Below, piece after piece: positions 9,574-36,577 of a stretch of 64,000 bases of DNA. Numbering within the stretch: the first letter of the stretch is position 1; the number at the start of each line of letters is the position of its first letter. Position numbers and translations under genes: made by a program. The notes under the pieces are model-generated. The model saw only the letters and a program-made list of their open reading frames with translations, was not told the origin of the DNA and did not search any database. Where the stretch lies: the IMG/VR virus record IMGVR_UViG_3300034117_001294, positions 62,001 through 126,000 of that record. One strand, 5' to 3'.

Positions 9574-9675
9574 ATGAACTTTATCATATCTCTATTCCGT
9601 GAGTTCCAAGAGCGTAGACGCATACGTAAAAAATTAAAAGAGTTTCGTAAAAGAGACCCTTTCATTTACAAATGA
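9574..9675 (+). CDS. small basic protein (33 aa, ...KRDPFIYK)
   Basis: ORF coupled (ATGA) to the carbamoyltransferase; TAAATA upstream. Confidence 0.55.
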   Translation: MNFIISLFREFQERRRIRKKLKEFRKRDPFIYK

Positions 9676-10541
9676 CTGTAGTAGGAATAAACGCTCTTAA
9701 CCACGATGCTAGTATTGCGGTTGTGGACAATGGTCAAATATTGCACCATGAACGATCCCTGTGTGGAGTTGACCTTTGTCCTGAACTAGTTGATCGTGCA
9801 TTATCATACGGAGCAGTAGATGCAATTGCTTGGTACGAAAGGCCTTGGCTGAAAAAGTCACGGCAGCTATACGCAGGGCAATACAGAGATGCAGTCAGCA
9901 TTGATCAGCTACCTCATTACTATCTAAAAAAATTTAACATACCTTCTGTTCCAATTTATTATGTGCCGCATCATTTAAGTCATGCAGCCAATGCAGTATA
10001 TGAAAGTAGATTAGCTGAGACTGCGGTCGTAGTAGCCGATGCAATTGGAGAGTGGGATACTGTGAGTATCTGGCATTATAAAGATCAAAAATTTAAAAAA
10101 GTATTTTCAAAAGGTTATCCTTATAGCCTTGGTTTGTTCTACTCAGCATTTACAGAGTTACTGGGATTTAAACCTGTCCAAGAAGAGAGCAAACTTACTA
10201 TGCTAGCAACATCTGGTGATTGGGAACCAAACTACTTAACAGTCTGCGGCTACCTAACAAAGAATCTGCATAAAGGAATCTGGGATTGGGAAGTAGCAGA
10301 AAAAGATCGTGCAGACGTAGCTGCCAGCGTACAACGTGTGTTCATGGAACAGATAAAAAATTGCTTTAAACTTGCCTCTTTTCACAGTAATTCTTGTGTT
10401 TTTACAGGCGGATGTGCCTATAATGTGCCTGCAAAAAGGCTTCTTTCATCTACATTTAAACACAGCTATGTTCCAAAAAATCCAGGCGATGCAGGGTCAA
10501 GCATGGGTGCTGCACTATACATATCGGATAAACTAAAATAA
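9672..10541 (+). CDS. carbamoyltransferase N-terminal (Kae1-like) domain, NodU/CmcH family
   Basis: NHDASIA, HHLSHAA, DAIGE, SLGLFY, GGCAYN, PGDAGSSMGAA. Confidence 0.85.
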   Translation: MTVVGINALNHDASIAVVDNGQILHHERSLCGVDLCPELVDRALSYGAVDAIAWYERPWLKKSRQLYAGQYRDAVSIDQLPHYYLKKFNIPSVPIYYVPHHLSHAANAVYESRLAETAVVVADAIGEWDTVSIWHYKDQKFKKVFSKGYPYSLGLFYSAFTELLGFKPVQEESKLTMLATSGDWEPNYLTVCGYLTKNLHKGIWDWEVAEKDRADVAASVQRVFMEQIKNCFKLASFHSNSCVFTGGCAYNVPAKRLLSSTFKHSYVPKNPGDAGSSMGAALYISDKLK

Positions 10542-10548
10542 ATACATC

Positions 10549-10833
10549 ATGAGAGCACACGAATTTATTAACGAAGACTGGAATAAAGTCAACAGAAAAG
10601 ATAAGACTGATGGTCTAAGCCAAAAGGCAGTAAATGCTTACCGAAGAGAGAATCCGGGTAGTAAGTTAAAGACAGCAGTAACTACTAAGCCTAGCAAATT
10701 AAAAGCAGGTAGCAAGGATGCTAAACGCCGTAAGAGTTTCTGTGCCCGTATGAGTGGCAATAAAGGTCCTATGAAAAAGCCTAACGGAAAACCTACACCA
10801 AAAGCATTAGCACTACGCCGATGGAATTGCTAA
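10549..10833 (+). CDS. small basic phage protein
   Basis: MRAHEFINE N-terminus; RRKSFCARM...ALRRWNC. Confidence 0.7.
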   Translation: MRAHEFINEDWNKVNRKDKTDGLSQKAVNAYRRENPGSKLKTAVTTKPSKLKAGSKDAKRRKSFCARMSGNKGPMKKPNGKPTPKALALRRWNC

Positions 10834-10836
10834 TTT

Positions 10837-11484
10837 ATGAAACCTACCGTTGCCCTGTTTTTGTATGATCCTAAATGTAGCGTACAGTCAGGCAATGGAG
10901 TTATACGATCATTACAGTCACATTATAACTTTAAAATATTCAGCATCAATCCCTTAGAAGATAACTTCTTTGATGATGTAGACATGATAGTTATTCCTGG
11001 CGGCTTTGGTGATGCTAGTACATTTGACCGTGCATTTAAATATACTAAAGATAGAGTTAAAACATTTGTAAGCGGTGGTGGTAAGTATTTAGGTATATGC
11101 ATGGGTGCGTATTGGGCCGGCCAACACTATTTTGATATACTGGACAGCGTTGATGCTGTTCAATACTCAACGCAACCCAATACAGATACACGCAGACCAC
11201 ACGCTAAAAATATCAGTATAACTTGGAAAAACCAGCCAATGAATATGTTTTGGTATGATGGTTGTGCTTTAGTAGGTAACTCTGCTAAGTTTAACACCAT
11301 TGCCACATATGCAAACGGAGACGCTATGGCTATTATACAAAACAATATCGGTGTAATAGGTTGCCATCCAGAAAGTGAAAACTATTGGTACGATAGCTAC
11401 TCATGGATGGCGGGCAAGTATCACAATGGACAACATCACCGTCTGCTTTTAGACTTTGCTAACCAACTAAATACTGGATGTTGA
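10837..11484 (+). CDS. class I glutamine amidotransferase-like (BPL_N-type) protein
   Basis: IPGG, YLGICMGAY nucleophile elbow, HPE. Confidence 0.8.
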   Translation: MKPTVALFLYDPKCSVQSGNGVIRSLQSHYNFKIFSINPLEDNFFDDVDMIVIPGGFGDASTFDRAFKYTKDRVKTFVSGGGKYLGICMGAYWAGQHYFDILDSVDAVQYSTQPNTDTRRPHAKNISITWKNQPMNMFWYDGCALVGNSAKFNTIATYANGDAMAIIQNNIGVIGCHPESENYWYDSYSWMAGKYHNGQHHRLLLDFANQLNTGC

Positions 11485-13532
11485 AAAAAATCCTAACAAG
11501 TCCATGGACAGCATTGCTGACATTGGCACTTATTTTAAGTATAAGAATTGCTGATCCTGTCTTTGTAGAAAGTATAAGACTACGCTATTTTGATACGCTG
11601 ATTACATCTAAAGAAACTACTGTTAACAACATTGTTACAGTAAACATTGATGAAGGGAGCTTAGACAAATATGGACAATGGCCGTTACCTCGTGTTGAGT
11701 ATTCCCGACTTATACGAGATTTATATCAGAGGGGAGCGGGCCTTGTGGTACTTAACGTACTCATGCCAGAAACAGATCGTACAGGTGGTGACAGTCAACT
11801 GGGTAAAGCTCTAAAAGAATACCCAGTTGTATTAGGCAGCATTCCTGCACAGAAAACAAAGAACGAACCACGCAATCCCGGTTCGGCAGTATTAGGTCCT
11901 GAGTACTTGGATCAAATTATACAGTATCCGGGTTTGATTGCCAACGTACCTGTGTTAGAGAACGCAGCAGCAGGTGTTGGTATCGTAAACACACTGCCAG
12001 AAGTAGATGGTGTTAATCGCAGATTGCCGTTAATTGTCACAGTTGACGGTAAGTTATATCCTAGTCTAGCTATGGAAACACTCCGCGTAGCGGCAGGCGA
12101 TTCAACATTCCAAGTCAAGCTATTTGAAGGTGGAGTTGAGAAGATGCGTATACCTAAGTTTGGTCCTGTAGCAACAGATAACTTAGGTCGCATATGGATT
12201 GATTGGAGTCAGGCAAGTCACAGCGTTAGTGCAGTAAACCTGCCAAAAGATCTAGCAGGTGCTATTGTTATCGTAGGCCCAACAGCCGCAGGTATTGCTA
12301 ATCCATTACCCACTAGTAAGGGTGCAGTATTTCCACACGAAGTACAGGCCGCAGTAATAGGCACAATGATGAACAATGTAACTATCCAGCGTCCGGATTA
12401 CGCAGATGGTGTGGAAATTATTGTACTGTTAGCAGCAGGCGTACTATTATTATTTTTAACAAGGTGGGTATATGTTGGACTTGGAACAGTGGTTGCTCTT
12501 TCTATGGGTGGTGTTGCTGTCAGCATGTATGCTTATAGCCAGTATCTTTATCTGTTTGATGCTACTGCTTTTGTCAGTGGCATATTGCTTGTGGCATTAC
12601 ATGCATACGGAGTTAAATTCGTAAGCGAGTTTTTACAGAAGCAGGCAATCAAGAAACAGTTTGCAGGTTACGCTAGTCCTACAGTGGTTAGATTACTGCA
12701 AGAAAATCCAGACCTTATTAAGAAGGGTGTTAAGAAAGAAGTCAGCATACTGTTTTCAGACTTACGTGGCTTTACACCCCTAGGTGAAAGCTTTGGTGAT
12801 GATGTTGCGGGGCTTACACGTATAATGAACGGCTACATGGACGCTATTACGCAACCTGTATTAGATGCAGACGGAATGATTATCAAGTACATCGGTGATG
12901 CCAGTATGCACATACACAATGCACCCATTGAAGATCTTAATCACCCGTCAACAGCAGTTCGCACAGGATTAAAGATGCTTAGAGCTGTAGATACTTTTAA
13001 CCGAGACGTGATTGTTCCGCAAGGCAGACCACCAGTTGGTATGGGTGCAGGCATTAATACAGGATTGGGCTACATCGGTGAGATGGGCAGTACAGCTCGA
13101 CACAGTTACGATGTACTAGGCGATGCCGTTAGCACAGCCGCACGTATCGAAAGCAAGTGTAAAGAATACGGTTGCCTGTTATTAGTAGGTGGAGCAACCG
13201 TTCAACGATGTGCTGACGAGTTCTTCTTCCTTAAGATTGACGACCTAGCAGTTAAAGGTAAGAGTGTAGGAGTTGCTATCTATACAGTACTTGACCCTGA
13301 CGTAACTGTTGCCGCAGAATATTTGTTAGCACAAGAAACTCATAATGAAATGCACTCATGTTATAGACAGCAGAAATGGGACGATGCCATTACACTGTGT
13401 GAAGAACTGAAAGATGAGTTCGACGGGCAAATGAAAAAATACTACAGCATGTGGATAGAACGCTGTGAGTTTCAAAAGACTCAAATACTTCCAGCCGACT
13501 GGAATGGCGTATTCATAGCCACAAGCAAGTAA
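11478..13532 (+). CDS. CHASE2-domain class III adenylate/guanylate cyclase
   Basis: IDEGSL..YGQWPLPR CHASE2 motif, TM helices, FSDLRGFT, KYIGDA, GDAVSTAARIES. Confidence 0.92.
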   Translation: MLKKILTSPWTALLTLALILSIRIADPVFVESIRLRYFDTLITSKETTVNNIVTVNIDEGSLDKYGQWPLPRVEYSRLIRDLYQRGAGLVVLNVLMPETDRTGGDSQLGKALKEYPVVLGSIPAQKTKNEPRNPGSAVLGPEYLDQIIQYPGLIANVPVLENAAAGVGIVNTLPEVDGVNRRLPLIVTVDGKLYPSLAMETLRVAAGDSTFQVKLFEGGVEKMRIPKFGPVATDNLGRIWIDWSQASHSVSAVNLPKDLAGAIVIVGPTAAGIANPLPTSKGAVFPHEVQAAVIGTMMNNVTIQRPDYADGVEIIVLLAAGVLLLFLTRWVYVGLGTVVALSMGGVAVSMYAYSQYLYLFDATAFVSGILLVALHAYGVKFVSEFLQKQAIKKQFAGYASPTVVRLLQENPDLIKKGVKKEVSILFSDLRGFTPLGESFGDDVAGLTRIMNGYMDAITQPVLDADGMIIKYIGDASMHIHNAPIEDLNHPSTAVRTGLKMLRAVDTFNRDVIVPQGRPPVGMGAGINTGLGYIGEMGSTARHSYDVLGDAVSTAARIESKCKEYGCLLLVGGATVQRCADEFFFLKIDDLAVKGKSVGVAIYTVLDPDVTVAAEYLLAQETHNEMHSCYRQQKWDDAITLCEELKDEFDGQMKKYYSMWIERCEFQKTQILPADWNGVFIATSK

Positions 13533-13539
13533 TATCTGC

Positions 13540-14000
13540 AGGCCTACTATCCAAAATAGATCGCCATTTCGGTCGCAATCATTTTGGATAGCCTGTATAA
13601 TGTAAGTTACACACTTACATTCACACTCCCATTATTCGCAACTTAAGGTGAAACAGCACCGGTAATTTTCTGTTGGTCAAGGTTCTGACGTGTGACCCAA
13701 TGACCTAGCCTCATTGCGAGGGCGATTTCAATCCACTACCCGAGAGGATGCTTAAACGTCTGCCCACTGGCACGAAACGTTTGGATTGTCATAATAGTTG
13801 AAAAGATTTTCTATACTCTCATAGGAACAGTGACACCGCAGTTTCTTTAAAAGTCGTAGTAGGTTGGGTAAGGTACAGAGCCCAGAAGAGTGAAGATCAA
13901 ATACCTACTGTCAAGTGTGTGCAGAGCAACTCAGCAAACATCATAAGATCACCCTCCGTAGAGGGTGTCGTATGGCTTCACAATCTAGCAAAACTTTCTC
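13540..14000 (+). ncRNA. candidate large structured ncRNA
   Basis: ~460 nt without a credible ORF, packed with hairpins; strand not certain. Confidence 0.55.
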
Positions 14001-14003
14001 AAA

Positions 14004-14339
14004 TCAACTTTCACCTGATGTAGCTGACTTAGTATCTTCGTTACCCTCGCTTTTAGAGCGGTCTATTTTATTAATTGCTTTCTCTGCTTCTACACGTTCA
14101 AACTCAATTGTCTTACCACGTAGATGTAACACTGTATTAACTTTTTGGTTAAGTCTGATAAGGTCATTATCCAACATACGTATACGATCAATTAGTGCAA
14201 TCAAAACTGTGTTAGCATCGCTAATAACTGGTTTCACTTCCTTAGTAGCCCATTCCCACACATACTTGATAATGAATCCCATGCCTACTGCCATAACAAT
14301 AGGGAATCCGTACTTGTTAACTAATTCAACGACATCCAT
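14004..14339 (-). CDS. small membrane protein (paralog of 14663-14944)
   Basis: N-terminal TM (YGFPIVMAVGMG), LIDRIRMLDNDLIRL; start at ATG 14339. Confidence 0.7.
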   Translation of the reverse strand: MDVVELVNKYGFPIVMAVGMGFIIKYVWEWATKEVKPVISDANTVLIALIDRIRMLDNDLIRLNQKVNTVLHLRGKTIEFERVEAEKAINKIDRSKSEGNEDTKSATSGES

Positions 14340-14485
14340 TATAATATTACTCCTAGAATGAATCCTACTACTAATCCGAACATGCCGGCTCTCCACATGT
14401 CGCTATCGTGCCAAATTGGTTGGCTTTTTAAATAAATTTTGGTTGATTGGGGTAAACTGTCCCACCATGCTTCATACTTGCTCAT
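14339..14485 (-). CDS. small membrane protein (48 aa)
   Basis: MSKYEAWWDSL...GLVVGFILGVIL; fills the gap with coupled stop/start. Confidence 0.55.
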   Translation of the reverse strand: MSKYEAWWDSLPQSTKIYLKSQPIWHDSDMWRAGMFGLVVGFILGVIL

Positions 14486-14663
14486 ACTGTTTACTCCTTA
14501 TGAATTTTTCAAGAGGATCTATTTTGACTAGCATTTGCTTACCGTCGACATTGATAAACTTAAACATGTCGCCTGCTCGCCATCCTAATCTATCTGTATT
14601 AAGTTCTTCATCTAAAACAATCTTGTCTGGATGTAGATCCCAACGATAATCAATGTGCAACAT
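14472..14663 (-). CDS. hypothetical protein
   Basis: coupled ORF within the operon. Confidence 0.6.
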   Translation of the reverse strand: MLHIDYRWDLHPDKIVLDEELNTDRLGWRAGDMFKFINVDGKQMLVKIDPLEKFIRSKQYEQV

Positions 14664-14944
14664 TAATCTCTCCTTGCATCGTTTTTGCCGTCTGCACGAG
14701 CAATACGATCTGCATCAGGACGCAGACCTAGAGCATTGGATACAATTGTATCGATACGTATAACATCGTGATTCATAGTTTTTACACGATTGTCCAGTGC
14801 TGTGATAATACCAGCCATTCCTTTTATTGACCCAAGAACGCCCTGCAACAACAGCTTGATAGTTAAGTACACAAAGTACCCGCCTGCAAGTGCTGCCGCA
14901 ACTGGCATACCGAGGTCGCCGATAATTTTAAAAATATCGCCCAT
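14663..14944 (-). CDS. small membrane protein
   Basis: TM segment, ALDNRVKTMNHDVIRID; GGAG SD. Confidence 0.7.
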   Translation of the reverse strand: MGDIFKIIGDLGMPVAAALAGGYFVYLTIKLLLQGVLGSIKGMAGIITALDNRVKTMNHDVIRIDTIVSNALGLRPDADRIARADGKNDARRD

Positions 14945-15020
14945 TTTTGCTCCTAGTCCTAAGTTGTGGTGTAATCGTATTTACTAGGTATATAATTTTT
15001 AAAACCTGGTACTTAATAAC

Positions 15021-24565: not shown

Positions 24566-24640
24566 CCTCTTGTAGCTCAATGGCTAGAGCAATCGGCTGA
24601 TAACCGGTAGACATAAGTTCGATTCTTATCGAGAGGACCA
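24566..24640 (+). tRNA. tRNA-Ile(GAT)
   Basis: cloverleaf, CTGATAA loop, CCA. Confidence 0.9.
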
Positions 24641-24647
24641 AGTTTAT

Positions 24648-24722
24648 ACCGCAGTAGTCCTCTGGGAGGGCAACGGATTGTCTATCCGACTTAGGTGAGT
24701 TCGATCCTCACACACGGAGCCA
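24648..24722 (+). tRNA. tRNA-Asp(GTC), chimeric with mispaired acceptor
   Basis: TTGTCTA loop; 3' part identical to the Asn tRNA at 26253-26286. Confidence 0.6.
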
Positions 24723-24807
24723 TTATAGAAGCACATACAGATCCGCCCGAGTAGTAAGGGAGATAGCGACTAACCGTTGAAGGACTGTTTAAATGTGTTT
24801 CTATAAT

Positions 24808-24882
24808 GGGGGCAGCAGAGGGCTGCGGAGTTGCCTTGCAAGCATCTTGTCTAGAGGGGTTCGATACCCCCGGCCTCCACCA
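24808..24882 (+). tRNA. tRNA-Ala(TGC), atypical D arm
   Basis: G3:U70, CTTGCAA loop, CCA. Confidence 0.7.
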
Positions 24883-24889
24883 ATTTTAT

Positions 24890-24965
24890 CTCTCTAAAGC
24901 GTTATCAGGTTGCGTACACGGTTTGGGGCCGTGTGGTCCAGGTTCGAATCCTGGTAGGGAGACCA
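24890..24965 (+). tRNA. tRNA-Pro(TGG)
   Basis: cloverleaf, TTTGGGG loop, CCA. Confidence 0.88.
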
Positions 24966-24971
24966 ATTAAT

Positions 24972-25047
24972 GCACCTTTAGCTGATGTGGTCATAGCGGC
25001 GGTCTGAAGAACCGTTGAAGTTGGTTCGATTCCAACAGGGTGTACCA
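24972..25047 (+). tRNA. tRNA-Phe(GAA)
   Basis: CTGAAGA loop, CCA. Confidence 0.9.
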
Positions 25048-25052
25048 AATTT

Positions 25053-25127
25053 GCCCTTTTATCCTTAATGGTAGAGGTCCTGTTTTGTAATCAGGGTGTG
25101 TGGGTTCGATTCCTGCAAGGGGCACCA
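25053..25127 (+). tRNA. tRNA-Thr(TGT)
   Basis: TTTGTAA loop, CCA. Confidence 0.88.
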
Positions 25128-25137
25128 AGCAAATTAT

Positions 25138-25212
25138 ACTCCGGTCGTCTAGTGGCTAGGACGCCAGCCTTTCAAGTTGGAGAAGCGGGATCGAAACCCG
25201 TTCGGAGTACCA
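25138..25212 (+). tRNA. tRNA-Glu(TTC)
   Basis: CTTTCAA loop, CCA. Confidence 0.88.
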
Positions 25213-25219
25213 AGTTTAT

Positions 25220-25306
25220 GGAGATGTAGGAAAATTGGTAACCCCAGTGGACTGTAAATCCGCCGCCCGAAAGGCACTACTGGTTCGACTCCAGTCGTCT
25301 CCACCA
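25220..25306 (+). tRNA. tRNA-Tyr(GTA)
   Basis: CTGTAAA loop, long variable arm, CCA. Confidence 0.92.
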
Positions 25307-25311
25307 TTTTA

Positions 25312-25386
25312 GGTCTGTTCGTATAGAGGTTATTACTGCGGATTGTCTATCCGCTTACGGGGGTTCGATTCCCCCACAGACCGCCA
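25312..25386 (+). tRNA. tRNA-Asp(GTC)
   Basis: TTGTCTA loop, GCCA. Confidence 0.9.
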
Positions 25387-25389
25387 AGT

Positions 25390-25587
25390 TTTGTAAGTGT
25401 CAGCAAGAGAAAGACTCGCTAGGAAGATTCTTCGAAGGTCAACCTAGTGTTAAAGTAGGGCGGGTTCGAGTACCGTAAATGCAATGGTGCACCTATGTCA
25501 AGTATTCCAAGTGACTTACCTCCTCCCGTCCGGACTTGCATGAATCGGGTGAATGGTTGCGATTACAGAGGTGCAACTACTTACAAA
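25390..25587 (+). ncRNA. CAGCAA-clamp variant RNA
   Basis: TTTGTAAGT-GTCAGCAA ... ACTTACAAA, internal hairpins. Confidence 0.5.
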
Positions 25588-25597
25588 TTCATTTCAG

Positions 25598-25626
25598 TTG
25601 ACAACTACTGCAAAAGGTTGTATAAT
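25598..25626 (+). promoter_or_regulatory. sigma70 promoter
   Basis: TTGACA-17-TATAAT. Confidence 0.85.
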
Positions 25627-25740
25627 ACTAACTTAAACAAAAAGGAAAATTGACATGAAACGTTCAGGTAAACTGTAGTGTCATCCTAGACCCCCGTATG
25701 GTCCTGGATGGCACGTGAAAGACAATTCTTTACGATCCAT

Positions 25741-25816
25741 CCACAGCTGGCGTTAACGGTAGCGTACTCGGCTCTTAACCGATGAGGTGTCAGTTCGAAT
25801 CTGACGCTGTGGACCA
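25741..25816 (+). tRNA. tRNA-Lys(CTT)
   Basis: CTCTTAA loop, CCA. Confidence 0.88.
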
Positions 25817-25819
25817 TAT

Positions 25820-25894
25820 GGGGGTATAATTCAACGGCTAGAATAGCTGGCTTTTAACCAGTCTATCAGGGTTCGATTCCCTGTGCCCCTACCA
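25820..25894 (+). tRNA. tRNA-Lys(TTT)
   Basis: CTTTTAA loop, CCA. Confidence 0.9.
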
Positions 25895-25974
25895 TATGCA
25901 AACACATTACTGCACAGCATTTTGACTTCCAGGTCTTTTTGTATGTTGTGGTCGTCTGTAGTGTGTTTACATAT

Positions 25975-26050
25975 GGTGATGTAGCATAGTGGCTAATGCA
26001 GTTCCTTCATACGGAAAAGATCGTCGGTTCGAGTCCGACCATCACTACCA
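25975..26050 (+). tRNA. tRNA-Met/Ile2(CAT)
   Basis: TTCATAC loop, 1-72 paired, CCA. Confidence 0.85.
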
Positions 26051-26056
26051 ATTTAT

Positions 26057-26131
26057 GGAGCTATCGTCTATCGGTTAGGACATCTGGTTTTCATCCAGGC
26101 AAGCGGGGTTCGATTCCCCGTAGCTCTTCCA
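26057..26131 (+). tRNA. tRNA-Glu(TTC)
   Basis: TTTTCAT loop, CCA. Confidence 0.88.
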
Positions 26132-26135
26132 AGTT

Positions 26136-26195
26136 TAGGATCGGTTCAGCAAACAAAAAGCTAACTTTTGGTGTCTAGCGACAAAAACGATCCTG
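26136..26195 (+). ncRNA. CAGCAA-clamp RNA 1 (TTG anticodon-like loop)
   Basis: TAGGATCG-GTTCAGCAA...CGATCCTG; inner hairpin loop TTTTGGT. Confidence 0.7.
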
Positions 26196-26205
26196 TTATT
26201 TCTAT

Positions 26206-26284
26206 TCCGTGAAATCCAAGCATGGTGCAAGGACTTGACTGTTAATCAATGATTAGGTGAGTTCGATCCTCACACACGGAGCCA
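26206..26284 (+). tRNA. tRNA-Asn(GTT)
   Basis: CTGTTAA loop, GCCA. Confidence 0.85.
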
Positions 26285-26809
26285 TTCATTAATATCCCAA
26301 CGCTGATTAATCCTAAACAAGATTACAACCCGCGGAAGGATATTACAATTTTGAAAAGCATGTGGAACTTGTGTATTAACAATTGCAGGCTCATTTGTTT
26401 CCACTTTTCCAACAAACTCACAGTCACTGTGGTTGTATAGCATGTAGGTAACATTGCCTTGCCCTGTACCTTGTATTCTCGGCTCTGTAGTTGAAGAATA
26501 AAAATTTAGAAAAGTATTATCAAATCCAAGGATAGGAATGTTTAGACTATAAACAAACCCTCCTGTATCTTTGTGAATAGGATATGTTCCTTTAAGACTT
26601 ACGTTAATAACTGCATAATGAAGATATTGATATAGTCCGTATGTTTGAAGTTGTTCTTTGAGTTCTGGAATATCAGTAAACTCCGAAGCTTTAACATATT
26701 GAAATAAAGGCTCATTAAGTTTTGTATGTTTGAGAACAACATCAACCATTTTATTTCTAATGGTGTCAATGTTTTCAAACTTGATTGATCTATAAAGTGC
26801 CGGATCCAT
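26270..26809 (-). CDS. 2OG-Fe(II)/cupin-like oxygenase
   Basis: IHKD...SLNIP...PHAFQN...R. Confidence 0.65.
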   Translation of the reverse strand: MDPALYRSIKFENIDTIRNKMVDVVLKHTKLNEPLFQYVKASEFTDIPELKEQLQTYGLYQYLHYAVINVSLKGTYPIHKDTGGFVYSLNIPILGFDNTFLNFYSSTTEPRIQGTGQGNVTYMLYNHSDCEFVGKVETNEPAIVNTQVPHAFQNCNILPRVVILFRINQRWDINEWLRV

Positions 26810-26833
26810 TCCGATATTTATAGCAAGTATTAT

Positions 26834-26909
26834 ACCGTCGTAGTAATCTGGGTATTACACCTCCCTGTCTAGGAGATCAAGGCGAGTTCGATTCTCGTCG
26901 GCGGTGCCA
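26834..26909 (+). tRNA. tRNA-Asp(GTC)
   Basis: CTGTCTA loop, GCCA. Confidence 0.85.
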
Positions 26910-26913
26910 ATTT

Positions 26914-26976
26914 TAGGATGCGTTCAGCAAACTTTATACATTCAACTTTTAATTGAAAACGTAAAAAAGCATCCTG
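26914..26976 (+). ncRNA. CAGCAA-clamp RNA 2 (Lys TTT anticodon stem-loop)
   Basis: TAGGATGC-GTTCAGCAA...GCATCCTG; TTCAA-CTTTTAA-TTGAA. Confidence 0.75.
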
Positions 26977-26987
26977 TTTTATTTTGT

Positions 26988-27061
26988 TGGTCTATGGTGT
27001 AATGGTAACACAACAGACTTTGACTCTGTCGTTCCAGGTTCGAGCCCTGGTAGGCCTGCCA
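26988..27061 (+). tRNA. tRNA-Gln(TTG)
   Basis: CTTTGAC loop, GCCA. Confidence 0.9.
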
Positions 27062-27070
27062 ACAATTCAT

Positions 27071-27147
27071 ACCCGCGTAACTCAGTGGACTAGAGTACTA
27101 CGCTACGAACGTAGGAGTCGGAGGTTCGAATCCTTCCGTGGGTGCCA
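27071..27147 (+). tRNA. tRNA-Arg(ACG)
   Basis: CTACGAA loop, GCCA. Confidence 0.9.
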
Positions 27148-27715
27148 AGTACTTGGTTAGCATATTGATAGATCGTTGCATAGAGGGTCTATATACACAT
27201 CCATCTTTTAAAGATGATAATACTAGACTGATACAATATCTATCTTCGATAGGATTAATGATATTATGAGGTACTCCGACTTGCACAACTGAAGGAAATC
27301 CTATAGGGGCTGAAAACAACAAATCAACTTCAGTTCGATTATATCCTATGTAATGTGAGTTAACCGCAGATAAACTTTGCTCAGTGCGAACAATATTATC
27401 TTTTGGTTTGTACCAATTCATAATGCTGTTAGCACCTCCAAATATCCAATTTATTTTAGTAAAGTCTCCATGTTTAACATCAACATGTATACCGCTAAAA
27501 AAATTAGGAGTAGAGTAGAACACTTCGCAATGATCTGGAAAAATATCTAAATCTGCTAGCAAGTCTAGCATGTCCGAGTTAATATGTTCCTTGATACTAA
27601 TTGAAGAATGATAGGATTTTTTGCCATTAACTATGTTAGGAAGACTTGTTAAACTATGTTTGTTTTTTAACAAGTCAACATTAAAATTTAAGTTATGATG
27701 ATACGTTGTCATCAT
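27098..27715 (-). CDS. 2OG-Fe(II)/cupin-like oxygenase
   Basis: IHVD...KINW...WY...PHNIIN...RYCIS; 3' end runs antisense into tRNA-Arg. Confidence 0.65.
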   Translation of the reverse strand: MMTTYHHNLNFNVDLLKNKHSLTSLPNIVNGKKSYHSSISIKEHINSDMLDLLADLDIFPDHCEVFYSTPNFFSGIHVDVKHGDFTKINWIFGGANSIMNWYKPKDNIVRTEQSLSAVNSHYIGYNRTEVDLLFSAPIGFPSVVQVGVPHNIINPIEDRYCISLVLSSLKDGCVYRPSMQRSINMLTKYLAPTEGFEPPTPTFVA

Positions 27716-27740
27716 TTATTTACCGAAAGACTTATTAGGT

Positions 27741-27811
27741 GTGGCTATGTTGTAATGGTAGCAACCTAGACTGTGACTCTGGTAGTACGGGTTCGAGTCC
27801 CGTTAGTCACC
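27741..27811 (+). tRNA. tRNA-His(GTG), no encoded G-1 or CCA
   Basis: CTGTGAC loop, C73; flanked by a 10-bp inverted repeat. Confidence 0.85.
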
Positions 27812-27850
27812 CCTAATAAGTTTTTGCCACATTGTGGCACCAATAAATAC

Positions 27851-27942
27851 GGAAAGTAATGCAGGGGAGTTGGTTCCCCGACCAGCCTTGAAAACTGGGT
27901 TCTCAGAAATGGGATGGGGTTCGACTCCTCTGCTTTCCACCA
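27851..27942 (+). tRNA. tRNA-Ser(TGA), 8/4-type fold with long D stem
   Basis: GGAAAGTA/TGCTTTCC, CTTGAAA loop, 4-bp T stem. Confidence 0.7.
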
Positions 27943-27947
27943 ATAAT

Positions 27948-28460
27948 ATGAACGAAGATTATTTTATCCCTGTTAACACTGACATTAATTTTTTACCTAA
28001 AGTAAAAGAATTTATTCCGAATGCAATTTGGAAATGGGTTCCGTCTATGTTTATTGCTACAAATTTATCTAGTACGCACATCGGTGATGATCAATTACTG
28101 AGTAAAATTCATAAGGAATTTTTAGGAGAGTTAAATCTTTATAAAATTCCATGTAAATCTGTCTATGGATGGCACCAGGATAAAAATTCAATAGGGTGTT
28201 CATTAAATATGGCATTAGATCGATATCATTGTCATACATTGTTTTCAGTTGGGAATCACGGAACTCCTTTCTTACAAAAAGTAATTGAACTTGAGTACGA
28301 TCCTAATACATGGTATGCATTTAATTCAAAACAGGTGCATACTGTAATAAATCTAGACGAAAAAGATAGATATCTACTTTCATATGTACTACCGGGAATT
28401 TTTTCCTACACAGATCTAAAATCTTGGTTAGTACAGCATACATATACTTCTCTGATGTAA
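27948..28460 (+). CDS. 2OG-Fe(II)/cupin-like oxygenase
   Basis: WHQD...SLN...VHTVIN...RYLLS; start moved to ATG 27948 after the tRNA. Confidence 0.65.
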   Translation: MNEDYFIPVNTDINFLPKVKEFIPNAIWKWVPSMFIATNLSSTHIGDDQLLSKIHKEFLGELNLYKIPCKSVYGWHQDKNSIGCSLNMALDRYHCHTLFSVGNHGTPFLQKVIELEYDPNTWYAFNSKQVHTVINLDEKDRYLLSYVLPGIFSYTDLKSWLVQHTYTSLM

Positions 28461-28519
28461 TGGCAGCATAGCGGTCTCCAAAACCGTTCGTTGGGGTTCG
28501 AGTCCCTAGGGGAGTGCCA
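28446..28519 (+). tRNA. tRNA-Trp(CCA)
   Basis: CTCCAAA loop, GCCA. Confidence 0.88.
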
Positions 28520-28524
28520 GTTTA

Positions 28525-28639
28525 AGGATACATACAGCAATGTCTAACGACACGTTGGTTCGATTCCAACATTATCCGCTTTGGATGATTCGCTCAATGG
28601 TAGAGCAATGGGCTTCATGCCCATCGAAACTGTATCCTG
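28525..28639 (+). ncRNA. CAGCAA-clamp RNA 3 containing a circularly permuted tRNA (TCA anticodon)
   Basis: order T arm, closed acceptor, D arm, anticodon arm inside AGGATACA/TGTATCCT. Confidence 0.75.
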
Positions 28640-28648
28640 TTTTATTAT

Positions 28649-28726
28649 GTAGGGGTTCCAGAGAGGCTTAATGGCACTGATTGCAAACCAGTTGATTCGT
28701 GGGTTCAAATCCCACTCCCTACTCCA
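28649..28726 (+). tRNA. tRNA-Cys(GCA)
   Basis: TTGCAAA loop, U73 CCA. Confidence 0.88.
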
Positions 28727-28731
28727 TTTAT

Positions 28732-28805
28732 GCGTGGTTAGTTTAATGGTAGAACCAGACGTTGCCAACGTTTAAGCAGGAGTTCGATTCTCCTACCCCG
28801 CACCA
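28732..28805 (+). tRNA. tRNA-Gly(GCC)
   Basis: TTGCCAA loop, CCA. Confidence 0.88.
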
Positions 28806-28825
28806 AGTTAGTTGTAAATATTGTT

Positions 28826-29395
28826 ATGTATTTTGTTAAATTAAAAGAACAATTTTTTCTAACACTAGATGCAAATATTGCAAAAGAAGAATTTGCAAAT
28901 TTTGGATCTGTAATCGGCAATGAATTTAAAGGTATACAATATAATAGAATACCGCAGTATTGTACTGATACTATGTTAGAAGTCGTTCCGGAAAATTATA
29001 GAAAACATTTTACATCGGGCATTATGAAAATTAATGTACCGTATGCAAGACCACACACTGATAGCGGAGTAACCGCAGTATTAAATTTTTATGTACAGAC
29101 TGCTGATGCTGTGACAGTATTTTATAATCAGCTTACTGAAGATTCGGTTTTAACAAAGATAAAAAATCAAACTAACGGAAGTGTCTTTAAATTAAAAGAT
29201 CTAGTTCCTGCTGCAAATTTTAAAGCATTGCCGGGAGACGTTTGGTTACTGGATGTAACGAAGCCGCATTCTGTTATTGCTGCATCCGCAGTTGATAGAG
29301 TAGCATTCTGTTTACACACTAACAGTTTATCTTTCGAAGAAGTCAAAAAAATATTTGAATGCCCGGGTGGTGGAATGGTAGACACACTTTACTGA
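28826..29395 (+). CDS. 2OG-Fe(II)/cupin-like oxygenase
   Basis: PHTD...LNFY...PHSV...R; 3' end runs into a tRNA. Confidence 0.65.
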   Translation: MYFVKLKEQFFLTLDANIAKEEFANFGSVIGNEFKGIQYNRIPQYCTDTMLEVVPENYRKHFTSGIMKINVPYARPHTDSGVTAVLNFYVQTADAVTVFYNQLTEDSVLTKIKNQTNGSVFKLKDLVPAANFKALPGDVWLLDVTKPHSVIAASAVDRVAFCLHTNSLSFEEVKKIFECPGGGMVDTLY

Positions 29396-29446
29396 GGTAA
29401 GGAAAAACACTAGGATGTGAGAGTTCGAATCTCTCCTCGGGAACCA
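29361..29446 (+). tRNA. tRNA-Leu(GAG), degenerate anticodon arm
   Basis: Leu-type D arm, CTGAGG loop, T arm, CCA. Confidence 0.6.
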
Positions 29447-29451
29447 TGTAT

Positions 29452-29528
29452 GCCTTCGTACGCTAATTGGGAGTGCGGCTTGCCTTAGAAGCAGGTGGTT
29501 GGGGGTTCGAATCCGCCCGAAGGTACCA
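29452..29528 (+). tRNA. tRNA with TAG (Leu) anticodon, short variable loop
   Basis: CTTAGAA loop, CCA. Confidence 0.75.
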
Positions 29529-29666
29529 TTTTTGTTATCCCGTTTGATCCCAAAGTGTTCGCATAATGGGTAGGGTATCGAGCAGTGCGGCGATATAGTT
29601 GCCATTGCGTCGTGAGGTTGTGGAACAATAAACTGATAAAATCCACAATATAACAAATCTGTTTAT

Positions 29667-29743
29667 GCCCCGTTACGCTAATTGGTAGTGCGGATTCTCT
29701 CAAAAGGAGTTGGCTGTCTGTTCGAATCAGACACGGGGTACCA
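29667..29743 (+). tRNA. tRNA with CAA (Leu) anticodon, short variable loop
   Basis: CTCAAAA loop, CCA; D arm near-identical to the tRNA at 29452. Confidence 0.75.
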
Positions 29744-29748
29744 ATTAC

Positions 29749-29823
29749 AGTTCCTTATTTCAGAGGTAGAATATCACATTGACATTGTGAAGGTCACTGG
29801 TTCGATCCCAGTAGGAACTACCA
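29749..29823 (+). tRNA. tRNA-Val(GAC)
   Basis: TTGACAT loop, CCA. Confidence 0.88.
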
Positions 29824-29824
29824 A

Positions 29825-30400
29825 TTATATAATTAAAGGTTTGAAAAGCTCAACTATTTCTTCCCAAGTAGAAAATTTTGCAGTTGCCCGAATGCTTAGA
29901 CACCAGCGAATATTTGCAATGTCCCGATTAGCAACATTATGAGGTATATTAGTTCTAACTAAACAAGGCCCTTCAATTCTAGCAGATTCAATGCAGACAA
30001 CATCGGCTCGATCAAAATGAATATATGGTGTGCCGCCGCTTGACATTTTAATATTATTTTGTTTACCGGGCAACGGGGAATACCAAAACATTTCTGAATT
30101 AGCAGACCCCCATACTATATTGATACCCCATACACAATGAGTAACTCCGTTAATAGTATCAATATGAATGTCTAGATTGCTGTTAGCATTACCTCTAAAA
30201 AAAATACATTCTGAAAGAATATCTATTCCGAAATTTTTAAAAAATTCAATAGACTCATCTGTAAGAAATTCTTTATGGTCAACTAACTTCATAGCCCAAT
30301 TGTGCTCTGATTTAGAATAAACCAAATCAATATAATGTTGCATGTCTATATTATCTTTTAATATTTTGACAGGAATATTTAATTTGTAATGGTTTTGCAT
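29825..30400 (-). CDS. 2OG-Fe(II)/cupin-like oxygenase
   Basis: IHID...GIN...WY...PHNVAN...RWCLS. Confidence 0.65.
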   Translation of the reverse strand: MQNHYKLNIPVKILKDNIDMQHYIDLVYSKSEHNWAMKLVDHKEFLTDESIEFFKNFGIDILSECIFFRGNANSNLDIHIDTINGVTHCVWGINIVWGSANSEMFWYSPLPGKQNNIKMSSGGTPYIHFDRADVVCIESARIEGPCLVRTNIPHNVANRDIANIRWCLSIRATAKFSTWEEIVELFKPLII

Positions 30401-30412
30401 TACGTATTTATT

Positions 30413-30487
30413 GCCCTAGTAGCTCAGTGGTAGAGCACCGTCTTGATAAGGCGGGTGTCCGTGGATCGTTCCCACGCTAGGGTACCA
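30413..30487 (+). tRNA. tRNA-Ile(GAT), unusual T loop
   Basis: TTGATAA loop; T loop ATCGTTC. Confidence 0.8.
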
Positions 30488-30506
30488 AAAAAAAAATAAA
30501 AAAGAC

Positions 30507-30575
30507 TTGACAGAGTCTTAAATAGACTGTATAATAAACACATACGCTAGCAACTGTTAGCACTGTTCTTTAAAA
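30507..30575 (+). promoter_or_regulatory. sigma70 promoter followed by boxB-like hairpin and boxA
   Basis: TTGACA-17-TATAAT; GCTAGC-AACT-GTTAGC; TGTTCTTTAAAA at 30564. Confidence 0.75.
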
Positions 30576-30591
30576 AGTTAAGTTGGTATTT

Positions 30592-30675
30592 GCCCCGGTG
30601 GTGTAATGGTAGCCACGCTGGTCTTAGAAGCCAGTGGAGAAATCCGTGTCGGTTCGAGTCCGACCTGGGGCACCA
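30592..30675 (+). tRNA. tRNA-Leu(TAG)
   Basis: CTTAGAA loop, long variable arm. Confidence 0.92.
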
Positions 30676-30790
30676 TATACAAACATACTATAGGTTGGGT
30701 TAGATTCGCGGTCTAACTATTTGGGTCTGTAGTGTAGCCCTCCAAAACTACACGCGACTAAGATACATAGTGTGTTTCTATATGGTGAAT

Positions 30791-30874
30791 GCGAGAGTGG
30801 AGAAATGGTATACTCAGGAGACTTAAAATCTCCCGTCGAAAGGCATGCGGGTTCGAGTCCCGCCTCTCGTACCA
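30791..30874 (+). tRNA. tRNA-Leu(TAA)
   Basis: CTTAAAA loop, long variable arm. Confidence 0.92.
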
Positions 30875-30883
30875 AACAATTAC

Positions 30884-30958
30884 CTGGCGTTCGTTCAATG
30901 GATAGGACAGCATTCTTCTAAAGTGCGAATAGAGGTTCGATTCCTCTACGCCGGACCA
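30884..30958 (+). tRNA. tRNA-Arg(TCT)
   Basis: CTTCTAA loop, CCA. Confidence 0.9.
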
Positions 30959-30979
30959 AGTTTTTTATTAAGGATCAAA

Positions 30980-31213
30980 ATGAGAGCAAGAACATCTGCA
31001 ACTTTTAAGTTGAGTAAGCGAACAAAAACAATGTTAGCATTGATGAAGTTTAAAAATAATCAAGACCGTCATGGTTTTAAAAATGCAATGATTGATGCAC
31101 AAGTGGCAGCAAGCATTGTTCCAAAATCAGAAAAGCGTGATCGTAACGCACCTCGCCCACAAGGCACTAGTTACGTGACCAATGACACTGGTACTGCAAG
31201 TACTAGCGTTTGA
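30980..31213 (+). CDS. hypothetical basic protein
   Basis: AAGGA SD; start at ATG 30980. Confidence 0.6.
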   Translation: MRARTSATFKLSKRTKTMLALMKFKNNQDRHGFKNAMIDAQVAASIVPKSEKRDRNAPRPQGTSYVTNDTGTASTSV

Positions 31214-31224
31214 GTAAAAAATAT

Positions 31225-31300
31225 TCCGCAGTAGCTCAGTCGGTAGAGTAGAAGACTGTTAATCTTTTGGTCCGTGGTTCGAGCCCACGCTGTGGAGCCA
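31225..31300 (+). tRNA. tRNA-Asn(GTT)
   Basis: CTGTTAA loop, GCCA. Confidence 0.92.
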
Positions 31301-31308
31301 AGTTAAAT

Positions 31309-31398
31309 GGTGCGGTCCTATAATGGTATTAGAGCGGATTGCTAATCCGTCGATCGGTGAAAGCCGGTTTCTGAGTTCGAGTCTCAGTCGCACCGCCA
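31309..31398 (+). tRNA. tRNA-Ser(GCT)
   Basis: TTGCTAA loop, long variable arm, GCCA. Confidence 0.9.
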
Positions 31399-31405
31399 AG
31401 TTTTT

Positions 31406-31469
31406 TAGGATCAGTTCAGCAAACATAATAAAAATTTCATTTATACTGAAACATAAAAAGTTGATCCTG
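31406..31469 (+). ncRNA. CAGCAA-clamp RNA 4 (TAT anticodon stem-loop)
   Basis: TAGGATCA-GTTCAGCAA...TGATCCTG; TTTCA-TTTATAC-TGAAA. Confidence 0.72.
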
Positions 31470-31478
31470 TTATTTTAT

Positions 31479-31570
31479 GCCCCTGTAGTTTAATGGTAGA
31501 ACAGCGGATTTATATCCCGTATGCAACAGATAATTGGTTAGTGTGGGTTCGACTCCCGCCGGGGGTACCA
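31479..31570 (+). tRNA. tRNA-Ile(TAT) with long variable region
   Basis: TTTATAT loop, CCA. Confidence 0.75.
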
Positions 31571-31728
31571 AGTTTTGAGATAGACGATGAGATGAGTCCC
31601 TTGTATTCTAGTGCCCTATTCTTGAGCATGACACACCAGTAGAATTGTACAAGGTCTGCATAAACTCTCTCATTCGAGACAACCCAGCGAGTCCTTAAGA
31701 AAGATAGTTGGTCTCTCAAAAACCTATT

Positions 31729-31789
31729 TAGGTTAATTACAGCAATAAAAAATGGCTGTCTGCTAGGACTTTAAACTAGTATTAACCTG
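31729..31789 (+). ncRNA. CAGCAA-clamp RNA 5
   Basis: TAGGTTAA-TTACAGCAA...TTAACCTG. Confidence 0.7.
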
Positions 31790-32081
31790 TTGAAAACCCG
31801 GTTTACTGTTTTACGTTATTAAAACAGCGTCCCTGAAACGATAGAACAGGGGGTACACTAGGACCTGACCTTACAGTCTTCTGTTCGGAGATACTGAAAA
31901 CTGCCTAGGGGCGGGAACAAAACCCGTCCAGATGGAAAAATTAGTGGACAGAGTAACCGCTCAGTTTGGGGCTCATGTGGTGTGAGTGGCTAGACACTTT
32001 ATTGAAATGCATTAGGTATCGTATCAAGTAGTGTAACTACTTTGCCAGCGGTGTTAGTGTGTTTCAATAAATAGATTTAAT

Positions 32082-32155
32082 GCGGGGTTAGTTTAGTGGT
32101 AAAACGAGATCCTTCCAAGTTCAAGTCGCGAGTTCGATTCTCGCACCCCGCTCCA
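32082..32155 (+). tRNA. tRNA-Gly(TCC)
   Basis: CTTCCAA loop, U73 CCA. Confidence 0.9.
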
Positions 32156-32163
32156 AGTTTTTT

Positions 32164-32239
32164 GCGTCCTTAACTCAGTTGGTAGAGTTCTGCCTTTACA
32201 CGGCAGCTGTCGGCGGTTCGAGCCCGTCAGGACGTACCA
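32164..32239 (+). tRNA. tRNA-Val(TAC)
   Basis: TTTACAC loop, CCA. Confidence 0.92.
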
Positions 32240-32246
32240 AGATAAT

Positions 32247-32323
32247 CGGTGTGTAGCTCAGCTTGGTAGAGCTCTGCGTTTGGGACGCAGTGGTCGCATG
32301 TTCGAATCGTGTCACACCGACCA
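32247..32323 (+). tRNA. tRNA-Pro(TGG)
   Basis: TTTGGGA loop, CCA. Confidence 0.92.
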
Positions 32324-32488
32324 ATAAACTCTCCCTTACATACGGAGTACAATGAGATAAGTAGTATGTAAACGAATTTAGACCGGACCTGTATCCATAC
32401 TCCGGTTCCGCTGAAGCGAAAACAGGATGGGCTGCTCTCACGGGGTTTGATGGTTTCCCGACACAACAATAATCATCAACAAGAATTA

Positions 32489-32562
32489 CGCGGGTAGGGT
32501 GGTCACCACACCGGTCTCATAAGCCAGGTGCATCGGAGGTTCGAATCCTTCACCCGCATCCA
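32489..32562 (+). tRNA. initiator-like tRNA-Met(CAT) with reduced D arm
   Basis: C1:A72 mismatch, CTCATAA loop, CCA. Confidence 0.7.
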
Positions 32563-32567
32563 TATTT

Positions 32568-32642
32568 GGGCTGATAGTGATAATGGGAGCACAGTGGCTT
32601 TGCAAGCCTCGGGTGGGAGTTCGATCCTCCCTCGGTCCACCA
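32568..32642 (+). tRNA. tRNA-Ala(TGC)
   Basis: G3:U70, TTTGCAA loop. Confidence 0.88.
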
Positions 32643-32657
32643 ACAAAGGAATGTTAT

Positions 32658-32795
32658 ATGAGTACAAAAGATACACTTGATAAAGCATATGGCAATATTC
32701 CCAAAGAGCCGGTATCATTTATACAATTTGATTTACCGACATTTAGAGGAATTAAGTATTACTGGCTGCGGCTAGTAAGACTTTTTACTCGTTAA
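32658..32795 (+). CDS. hypothetical 45-aa protein
   Basis: AAGGA SD, ATG 32658. Confidence 0.5.
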   Translation: MSTKDTLDKAYGNIPKEPVSFIQFDLPTFRGIKYYWLRLVRLFTR

Positions 32796-32806
32796 GTTTT
32801 GACCTT

Positions 32807-32924
32807 TAGGTTCTTTTCAGCAATTAAAAATAATCTTTCTGTAAAAAAGAGGGGCTGGGTTCGAATCCCGGGCGTGAGTTGGTCTTCACGTTGGTGTAGT
32901 GGTAGCACGTAAAAAGAGAACCTG
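32807..32924 (+). ncRNA. CAGCAA-clamp RNA 6 containing a circularly permuted tRNA (GTA anticodon)
   Basis: order anticodon arm, T arm, closed acceptor, D arm inside AGGTTCT/AGAACCT. Confidence 0.75.
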
Positions 32925-32955
32925 TTTAACTTTAACTTTAACTTCAAGGAAACAC

Positions 32956-33183
32956 ATGGCACGTTTAACGTCACAAGCAGCGGTAGAGATGGTAGGTAAT
33001 CGTTTTGATCTAGTATTGATTGCATCAATTCGTGCTAGAGAATTAAAGCGTGGGCATATGCCTATGGTTACCTGTAATAACGGATTCAACGTCACTGCAC
33101 TTCGAGAAATTGAAGCAGGTAAAGTGGGACGTGATTATTTGGAAAAGCTTCGCAAGCCTCCTAAAAAGAGTGAACACTATTAA
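32956..33183 (+). CDS. rpoZ: RNA polymerase omega subunit
   Basis: MARLT...VGNRFDLVLIAS.RAREL...ALREIEAG; SD before ATG 32956. Confidence 0.85.
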   Translation: MARLTSQAAVEMVGNRFDLVLIASIRARELKRGHMPMVTCNNGFNVTALREIEAGKVGRDYLEKLRKPPKKSEHY

Positions 33184-33188
33184 AGATC

Positions 33189-33647: not shown

Positions 33648-33688
33648 TAAATATTAAACAATATGCGTGAATACTTGCATTAATTAAT

Positions 33689-34438: not shown

Positions 34439-34440
34439 AA

Positions 34441-36576: not shown

Positions 36577-36577
36577 T

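Follow-up and report, generated by a model that had tools for sequence, protein, structure and literature searches.

A predicted structured RNA gene of a freshwater T4-like phage, with a 5′ domain related to Polynucleobacter-1 (RF01718) and a twin variable motif

The 471-nt gap between two convergent genes of a T4-like freshwater myophage probably holds a free-standing gene for a structured noncoding RNA, running on the + strand from approximately position 13594 to 14000 and possibly to 14071. Of the identity of this RNA we are confident: comparison of sequences places it as a conserved structured RNA that forms a divergent phage branch within a larger family, known in Rfam through its 5′ part as the Polynucleobacter-1 motif (RF01718). 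All positions refer to the window, the 64,000-nt stretch that was analysed, which comprises bases 62001–126000 of a 228,849-bp IMG/VR virus contig that is estimated to be 65% complete and derives from a phage akin to Methylophilales phage Melnitz. The gap (13533–14003) contains no ORF longer than 23 aa and is bordered on its 5′ side by the stop of a 684-aa cyclase gene homologous to Melnitz gp104 (11478–13532, +) and on its 3′ side by the stop of a convergent gene of 111–130 aa without a Pfam match (14004–14339 or 14004–14396, −); the stops at 13532 (+) and 14004 (−) thus bear out a preliminary description of this DNA, which had placed its RNA candidate between convergent genes. The Melnitz cyclase gene is followed by small genes with no comparable gap. 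Upstream of the gap, the genes at 9672–13532 (+) encode carbamoyltransferase-like and glutamine-amidotransferase-like proteins and then the cyclase, relatives of which are present on more than 500 IMG/VR contigs; the Melnitz homologue is annotated as an adenylate/guanylate cyclase and sits after a curli set (CsgF/CsgG/curlin). The RNA element itself occurs once in the phage contig.

Related loci were collected through the two flanking proteins and an invariant 19-mer, GGGTAAGGTACAGAGCCCA, and nhmmer delineated 48 distinct homologous stretches among them. With nhmmer and covariance models combined, the conserved core (approximately 13634–13997, +) was found on at least 42 distinct contigs from phages or MAGs. 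Two further copies lie on the short MAG contigs L219 and L229, one binned as Bacteroidetes and the other as Polynucleobacter; these were the only real ones among twelve 17-mer matches in bacterial genomes, the other ten being chance. A Polynucleobacter host is suggested by one binned 6-kb contig and by the RF01718 copies in that genus, and among cultured phages blastn matched only the cyclase gene. No protein family adjoins the element at more than 10 of 50 loci, and this variety of gene contexts argues for an independent gene rather than the leader or trailer of one particular gene. In L039, the RNA scores 395 bits and the adjacent cyclase is just 66% identical; the RNA element can exceed its neighbors in conservation. 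Elsewhere the element has other noncoding neighbors: in L167 it starts 17 nt past a phage-encoded permuted tmRNA gene, and in L111 and L188 such a gene lies 0.75–1.8 kb away. These two-piece tmRNA genes (L167 2967–3366, L188 2656–3125 and L111 290–736, all on the − strand) encode tags that end in ...YALAA or ...FALAA.

The conserved core comprises two domains, for which we built separate covariance models (model R1 for 13634–13802 and model R2 for 13796–13997). The 5′ domain (13634–13802, +), homologous to RF01718, contains P1 (13639–42/13797–800), S2 (13652–56/13670–74), H2a (13675–79/13701–05), H2b (13681–83/13695–97) with its near-invariant capping loop UCUGACGUGUG, and H3 (13708–11/13720–23), followed by a three-way junction that is closed by H4 (13729–35/13782–88) and holds H5 (13740–41/13746–47, with a GAGA loop), H6a (13755–58/13778–81) and H6b (13761–64/13769–72). 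The junction strands CACUACC and GAUGC are invariant. Model R1 found 46 copies and scores 126.5 bits on the window copy. In the model-guided alignment, standard pairs fill 89.9% of 1883 cells, compared with 70.2% in shuffles, and 37 of the 44 pairs change on both sides. The covariation of the domain is 0.525, against 0.196 in shuffles (0 of 500 reach it) and at most 0.11 with the partners slid; the shuffle values for either domain may be inflated by the kinship of the sequences, to which the slid controls are a partial answer because the structure was derived from the same sequences. The junction helices (helices 6–9) are among those supported by covariation.

The 3′ domain (13796–13997, +) contains two pseudoknots. 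In the first, Hb (13815–19/13887–91) and its upstream extension Hb′ (13809–11/13892–94) both cross Hd (13856–64/13903–11), which encloses He (13866–68/13881–83) and its invariant loop UAAGGUACAGAG (13869–80). In the second, PK2, the UGACACC loop (13831–37) of Hc (13823–28/13841–46) pairs with 13964–70. The latter strand also supplies the 3′ arm of Hf (13950–56/13961–67), so that PK2 and Hf are alternative pairings and a switch between two folds is possible. Model R2 found 42 copies and scores 200.2 bits on the window copy. A plain MAFFT alignment, both pseudoknots included, has 97.5% of cells paired versus 84.5% in shuffles, with a covariation of 0.430 versus 0.164 in shuffles and at most 0.096 in slid controls. 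In Hb and Hc every pair changes on both sides, and PK2, 99.6% paired, has one covarying pair, an A-U to G-C switch in seven sequences. The strand order Hb-Hd-He-Hb-Hd resembles the topology of an HDV-like ribozyme, a candidate that we rejected because Hb continues upstream as the covarying helix Hb′ and because no such family matches in Rfam. Across both domains, compensatory changes back approximately 80 base pairs, the two pseudoknots included, and the + strand pairs better than its complement (89.9% and 97.5% of cells in the two domains, versus 84.5% and 89.0% on the opposite strand, with 246 G-U cells). Long unpaired strands are also invariant, such as UUAAAARUCGUAG, CACUACC, UCUGAUGUGUG and the He loop. 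Folded as a single sequence, the region has only a slight advantage over shuffles (z = −2.4 on the + strand and −2.7 on the −), and the case for structure therefore rests on the homologues.

These comparisons sustain the view, put forward in the preliminary description, of a large, highly structured phage noncoding RNA conserved in its own right, and alter several of its details. The six inverted repeats listed there are all found in the sequence. The last four, GGTCA/TGACC (13675–79/13701–05), AAACGT/ACGTTT (13754–59/13776–81), AGTAGGT/ACCTACT (13858–64/13903–09) enclosing GGG/CCC (13866–68/13881–83), and CACCCTC/GAGGGTG (13950–56/13961–67), are helices with compensatory changes in 33–46 related sequences; the first two, of 11 bp (13547–57/13581–91) and 9 bp (13599–607/13613–21), fall outside this core, in the region of the putative promoter and leader. 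The proposed size of ~460 nt is roughly right, since the conserved RNA measures ~365 nt (13634–13997) and would reach ~390–460 nt with the leader and a possible terminator. Membership in GOLLD or ROOL, named there as a size class, was not upheld, as neither Rfam model matches at the gathering threshold in the window or at E values up to 10 in 13400–14150. The RNA is novel to the extent that it falls in no Rfam family at threshold; its 5′ half is nonetheless a divergent homologue of RF01718.

Upstream of the core we found a sigma-70-type −10-like box, TGTATAAT (13594–13601, +), which is aligned in the nearest relatives and may mark a promoter. In 29 of 35 copies, the 110 nt upstream include a TATAAT-like hexamer, and a consensus promoter scan did not call the box at 13594–13601; given that the hexamer occurs at variable distance in AT-rich DNA, we infer a promoter here without assigning it more firmly. 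The 11-bp stem CTATCCAAAAT/ATTTTGGATAG (13547–13591, +) lies just past the cyclase stop codon and just 5′ of the box, and several relatives whose upstream genes differ have a similar CCAAAA...TTTTGG hairpin ahead of the box; the window hairpin probably terminates the cyclase gene, serves as a promoter-proximal element, or does both. The variable leader (13599–13633, +) contains the hairpin AATGTAAGT/ACTTACATT, present in the closest relatives only, which overlaps the box and extends into the leader. The leaders of L206, L188, L167, L171, L111, L209, L198, L210 and L192 carry three to seven UAGGCA/UAGGCU repeats, spaced ~11–12 nt apart between the −10-like box and the conserved core, that could be protein-binding sites on RNA or DNA; the window copy has none. 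At the other end, conservation stops directly after the second copy of the twin motif described below, near 13997, and a possible intrinsic terminator, a 6-bp stem followed by TCTATTTTAT (14047–14071, +), lies within the 3′ end of the convergent gene.

The only Rfam matches in the window that reach the gathering threshold are tRNAs. The Rfam covariance-model search proposed in the preliminary description, run with E values up to 10 over 13400–14150, returned one sub-threshold match, RF01718 at 13671–13791 (+), with 15.4 bits and E = 0.71 against a gathering score of 37. This match is full-length (model positions 1–141) and aligns the junction strands CACUAnCC and GGAnGC; four other window-type copies gave no RF01718 match in Rfam. 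The motif was described by Weinberg et al. in 2010 as 141 nt long and of unknown function, with no copy in purified phage (PMC2864571). Its architecture of 5′ hairpins and then a three-way junction with conserved CACUAnCC and GGAnG strands is found in the window copy, and the search in the other direction agrees: model R1, built from phage sequences, matches the Polynucleobacter-1 loci L241 (53.7 bits, E = 3e-15) and L237 (16 bits) exactly at the RF01718 coordinates. Scanning for RF01718-type junction sequences gave 93 stretches on phage contigs, and the three that were checked score 69–75 bits with Rfam. Among the relatives, L210, L186 and L291 are hybrids in which an RF01718-type junction is joined to a window-type 3′ domain. 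These intermediates and hybrids show that the 5′ domains of the window-type and RF01718 RNAs are homologous. Both kinds of RNA occur in freshwater phage-like DNA.

The flanks of RF01718 show that the motif is the 5′ part of a 450–600-nt RNA that runs to an intrinsic terminator. Genuine RF01718 RNAs are present in 10 of 101 Polynucleobacter genomes searched, and, unlike in the 2010 picture, we find the family on well over 100 IMG/VR phage contigs; cultured phages gave no match to an RF01718-type RNA. Whereas the Rfam model spans 141 nt, the window RNA extends over ~365 nt or more, and its 3′ domain, with the GGGUAAGGUACAGAGCCC hairpin and two pseudoknots, is missing from Rfam. Apart from the twin motif, no significant similarity links this domain with the 3′ portion of the Polynucleobacter RNAs (E = 0.05–0.7). 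The RF01718-type RNAs end instead with a conserved GAGCGAAAGCGAA hairpin, in which tandem G-A pairs surround a GNRA-capped 2-bp stem, followed by the intrinsic terminator; this hairpin lies 60–150 nt after motif copy R2 in L259, L316, L283, L291 and the Polynucleobacter loci, and is missing from the window copy and nearly all window-type copies.

The feature common to all groups is a twin motif, in which CUC plus a variable core and UCU plus the same core lie ~54 nt apart. In the window, copy R1 (13927–13939, +) reads CAA-CUC-AGCAAAC, copy R2 (13981–13994, +) reads CAA-UCU-AGCAAAAC, and the two flank Hf. The core, 6–8 nt in length, varies between genomes, and the 42 aligned copies contain seven versions of its 6-nt form (AGCAAA, AACAAA, AGCGAA, AGAUGA, GGAUGA, AGCGAG and ACAUGA). 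The two cores of a given RNA are nevertheless identical in 40 of these 42 copies, whereas shuffling R2 among the sequences leaves 7.4 identical pairs on average and 17 at most; the two exceptions are misaligned copies, each of which has its own twin motif. Genuine RF01718 RNAs bear the motif further downstream, and the CUC-core...UCU-core layout is kept with other cores in RF01718-type phage RNAs (AGAUAAU, GGAUAAU, GAAUGAU, GACGAAA and others) and in Polynucleobacter RNAs (AGCGAAAG, AUCAAAAG, GGAGAAAG and others). As direct repeats that covary, R1 and R2 are not explained by mutual pairing. Within the RNA, no candidate partner holds for all sequences, and the H2 loop and the S2 strand each fit some copies and do not covary; in the 229-kb phage contig or beside the RNA, no complement of the cores was found, a single 12/13 match being within chance; and neither in phages nor in Polynucleobacter do the cores appear at cassette borders. 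With no complement within the RNA, beside it or in the contig, the pairing partner that we propose below is hypothetical. Pairing of the segments that precede R1 and R2 into a helix is plausible for RF01718-type RNAs and has no covariation support in the window type.

A GUUCAGCAAAC motif that resembles R1 lies elsewhere in the window. A hairpin element occurs three times (26132–26200, 26910–26975 and 31399–31470, +), directly after tRNA-Glu, tRNA-Asp and tRNA-Ser, in the form UUUAGGAUnnG-UUCAGCAAAC-(~30 A/U-rich nt)-nnAUCCU-GUUAUUU; its stems covary, and the elements look like terminators or processing signals. We rejected a link to R1 because the inter-tRNA motif stays CAGCAA in a relative whose R core is AACAAAC. 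The surrounding array (24566–40033, +) holds 35 tRNA genes by Rfam, and ARAGORN finds 34 in 24–33 kb alone; all are on one strand, and CCA ends are encoded wherever inspected. The tRNA-Asp (26834–26909) was called by ARAGORN and not by Rfam, and one gene (29361–29446) has an odd anticodon loop.

The neighbors of the RF01718-type relatives include two small enzymes. Four Polynucleobacter genomes have the RNA within a conserved ~2.7-kb block (L242 6035–8712, L243 5950–8915, L244 7572–9953 and L245 6085–8763), with a divergent DUF6641 gene on one side and, on the other side and the same strand as the RNA, a gene for a short PF00589 tyrosine recombinase of 188–211 aa that consists of the catalytic domain only. 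The recombinase gene is ~1 kb away from the RNA, and the DNA between them is variable. Near the block, L242 (12600–15440) and L244 (6750–6833) carry a tRNA-like 3′ end, GGTGGTTCGATTCCGCCCCGGGCCACCA, and then, between groups of genes, three partial copies of it in direct order; the arrangement looks like islands inserted in tandem at an RNA gene, within a few kb of the RF01718 block. Rfam and ARAGORN called no complete gene at this site. On phage contigs, a SegE-like GIY-YIG gene (PF19835, 132–147 aa) lies directly upstream of the RF01718-type RNA in 68 loci (L259 7319–7762 and 67 more in L257–L345), and encodes a protein that is nearly all catalytic domain, with no DNA-binding domain. Polynucleobacter-1 RNAs were reported to follow ‘GOS11034’ genes (PMC2864571), a remark that the position after the GIY-YIG gene matches. 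The same small protein is common in cultured T4-like phages that have no such RNA, as in Melnitz gp43, so the linkage may be plain synteny within one clade, and its value as proof of a functional pair is weakened. In cultured cyanophages and rhizobiophages, the homologues frequently bear the annotation ‘NAD synthetase’, apparently an error passed on between records. No recombinase, DUF6641 or GIY-YIG gene lies near any window-type copy, and none was found in the 229-kb contig at its 65% completeness; the DUF6641 search gave no match anywhere, controls included, and so carries no weight.

As a working model, we propose that the RNA would be transcribed from its own −10-like box and would act in trans instead of controlling a neighboring gene, an idea that follows from the neighbors differing between phages and from the next gene here being convergent. 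Its conserved pseudoknotted core may serve as a scaffold for a partner, protein or RNA, and the twin hypervariable cores R1 and R2 may form a specificity element that pairs with two copies of an external nucleic-acid sequence, while the 3′ arm common to Hf and PK2 would let the RNA switch between two folds. We put this whole chain forward tentatively, as possible rather than probable. An unlikely alternative fate for the same features is processing, by the RNA itself or by an enzyme, in which R1 and R2 would be the sites of cleavage or ligation on either side of the ~54-nt Hf segment and the core would be a ribozyme or a nuclease handle, with a small hairpin RNA released or circularised. Two identical short sites in direct order around a conserved hairpin would suit this arrangement, as would the density of pseudoknots and the invariant unpaired stretches that are typical of ribozymes, but known ribozyme families have no match in Rfam, the continuation of Hb as Hb′ defeats the HDV-like form, and we found no internal guide complementary to the sites. 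Moreover, such free variation between genomes would be surprising in a signal for sequence-specific cleavage. Nor does the RNA resemble other known catalytic or processed classes, as group I introns and RNase P RNA have no Rfam match at E values up to 10, and no host gene is seen to be interrupted by an intron, the cyclase gene ending as its Melnitz homologue does and the gene downstream being convergent.

The small enzymes beside the RF01718-type RNAs raise the idea of a partner or guide RNA for a DNA enzyme, with guide-like twin cores that would address two copies of a DNA site and with the window copy as an orphan served by a partner gene at another site, or as a decoy against a host system of this kind. 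We consider this quite unlikely: the 68 GIY-YIG loci and the DUF6641/RNA/PF00589 block of four Polynucleobacter genomes speak for it, but cultured T4-like phages commonly have the GIY-YIG protein and no such RNA, the window-type copies and their contig have no such gene, and the cassette borders are without R cores. Very doubtful, in our view, is a role in translation, in which the RNA of a phage with ~35 tRNA genes would bind tRNA 3′ ends, tmRNA or ribosomes. In some relatives the element does lie next to a phage tmRNA gene or close to tRNA arrays, the R1-like GUUCAGCAAAC motif sits in hairpins after three window tRNA genes, and the invariant loop UAAGGUAC has what we take to be a resemblance to the CCA-binding loop of bacterial RNase P RNA; that likeness is an 8-mer that could be chance, however, a tRNA or tmRNA gene lies within 3 kb in just 2 of 77 RF01718-type loci, and the inter-tRNA motif is constant while R changes in relatives. 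Rfam and ARAGORN see no tRNA- or tmRNA-like features in the element, and a tmRNA, standard or permuted, was rejected on the grounds that ARAGORN finds nothing in 12500–15000 and Rfam has no match. Close to excluded is the reading that there is no dedicated RNA and that the gap holds the terminators of the convergent genes or a DNA element such as protein-binding sites or a replication origin, the last being the fallback named in the preliminary description. The outermost hairpins do sit where terminators are expected, and TAGGCA repeats ~11 nt apart occur in the leaders of some relatives, but terminators and iterons explain neither the ~80 covarying pairs with their long-range helices, pseudoknots and G-U strand bias, nor the movement of the whole block as a unit between unrelated gene contexts.

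Two groups of known RNAs invite comparison. GOLLD and ROOL are large ‘ornate’ RNAs of phages and prophages that form homo-oligomer cages (PMC12286853). Like the window RNA, they are large, pseudoknotted, phage-encoded noncoding RNAs of unknown function that are sometimes near tRNA genes, and full-length relatives of the window RNA, at 550–600 nt, attain the size of ROOL. The window RNA differs from them in having no self-complementary loop that would suggest cages, and no internal complement to R1 or R2. In the bridge (seek) RNAs of IS110/IS1111 elements and the omega RNAs of IscB/TnpB (HEARO), short variable segments covary with the target and the RNA is encoded beside a DNA enzyme. The analogy is purely functional and lies in the relatives encoded beside a short tyrosine recombinase or GIY-YIG protein; genes for IS110, IscB or TnpB are absent, no enzyme adjoins the window copy, the R cores have no match in the flanking DNA, and the two variable segments are identical here rather than addressing two different sites. 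Nevertheless, we speculate, while thinking it improbable, that these may be modular ‘twin-address’ RNAs, in which a pseudoknotted scaffold presents one 6–8-nt sequence twice to paired DNA or RNA sites on behalf of enzymes without a DNA-binding domain (the Polynucleobacter recombinase and the phage GIY-YIG protein), or of which the orphan copies are decoys or competitors.

To our knowledge, RNAs that are large and intricately folded yet have no assigned function are uncommon, and every one investigated so far has led to new biology, as omega RNAs, bridge RNAs, ribozymes and RNA cages did. The window-type RNA is abundant in uncultured aquatic phages, and with the relation described here a 16-year-old orphan Rfam motif is redefined as only the first quarter to third of a 450–600-nt RNA. 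The covariance models and coordinates make the RNA directly testable. Its identical and fast-changing pair of short sequences suggests a programmable specificity element and, if the twin-address idea were true, the family would represent a new kind of RNA-specified DNA transaction, with orphan copies as decoys in conflicts between phages and hosts or between phages and islands.
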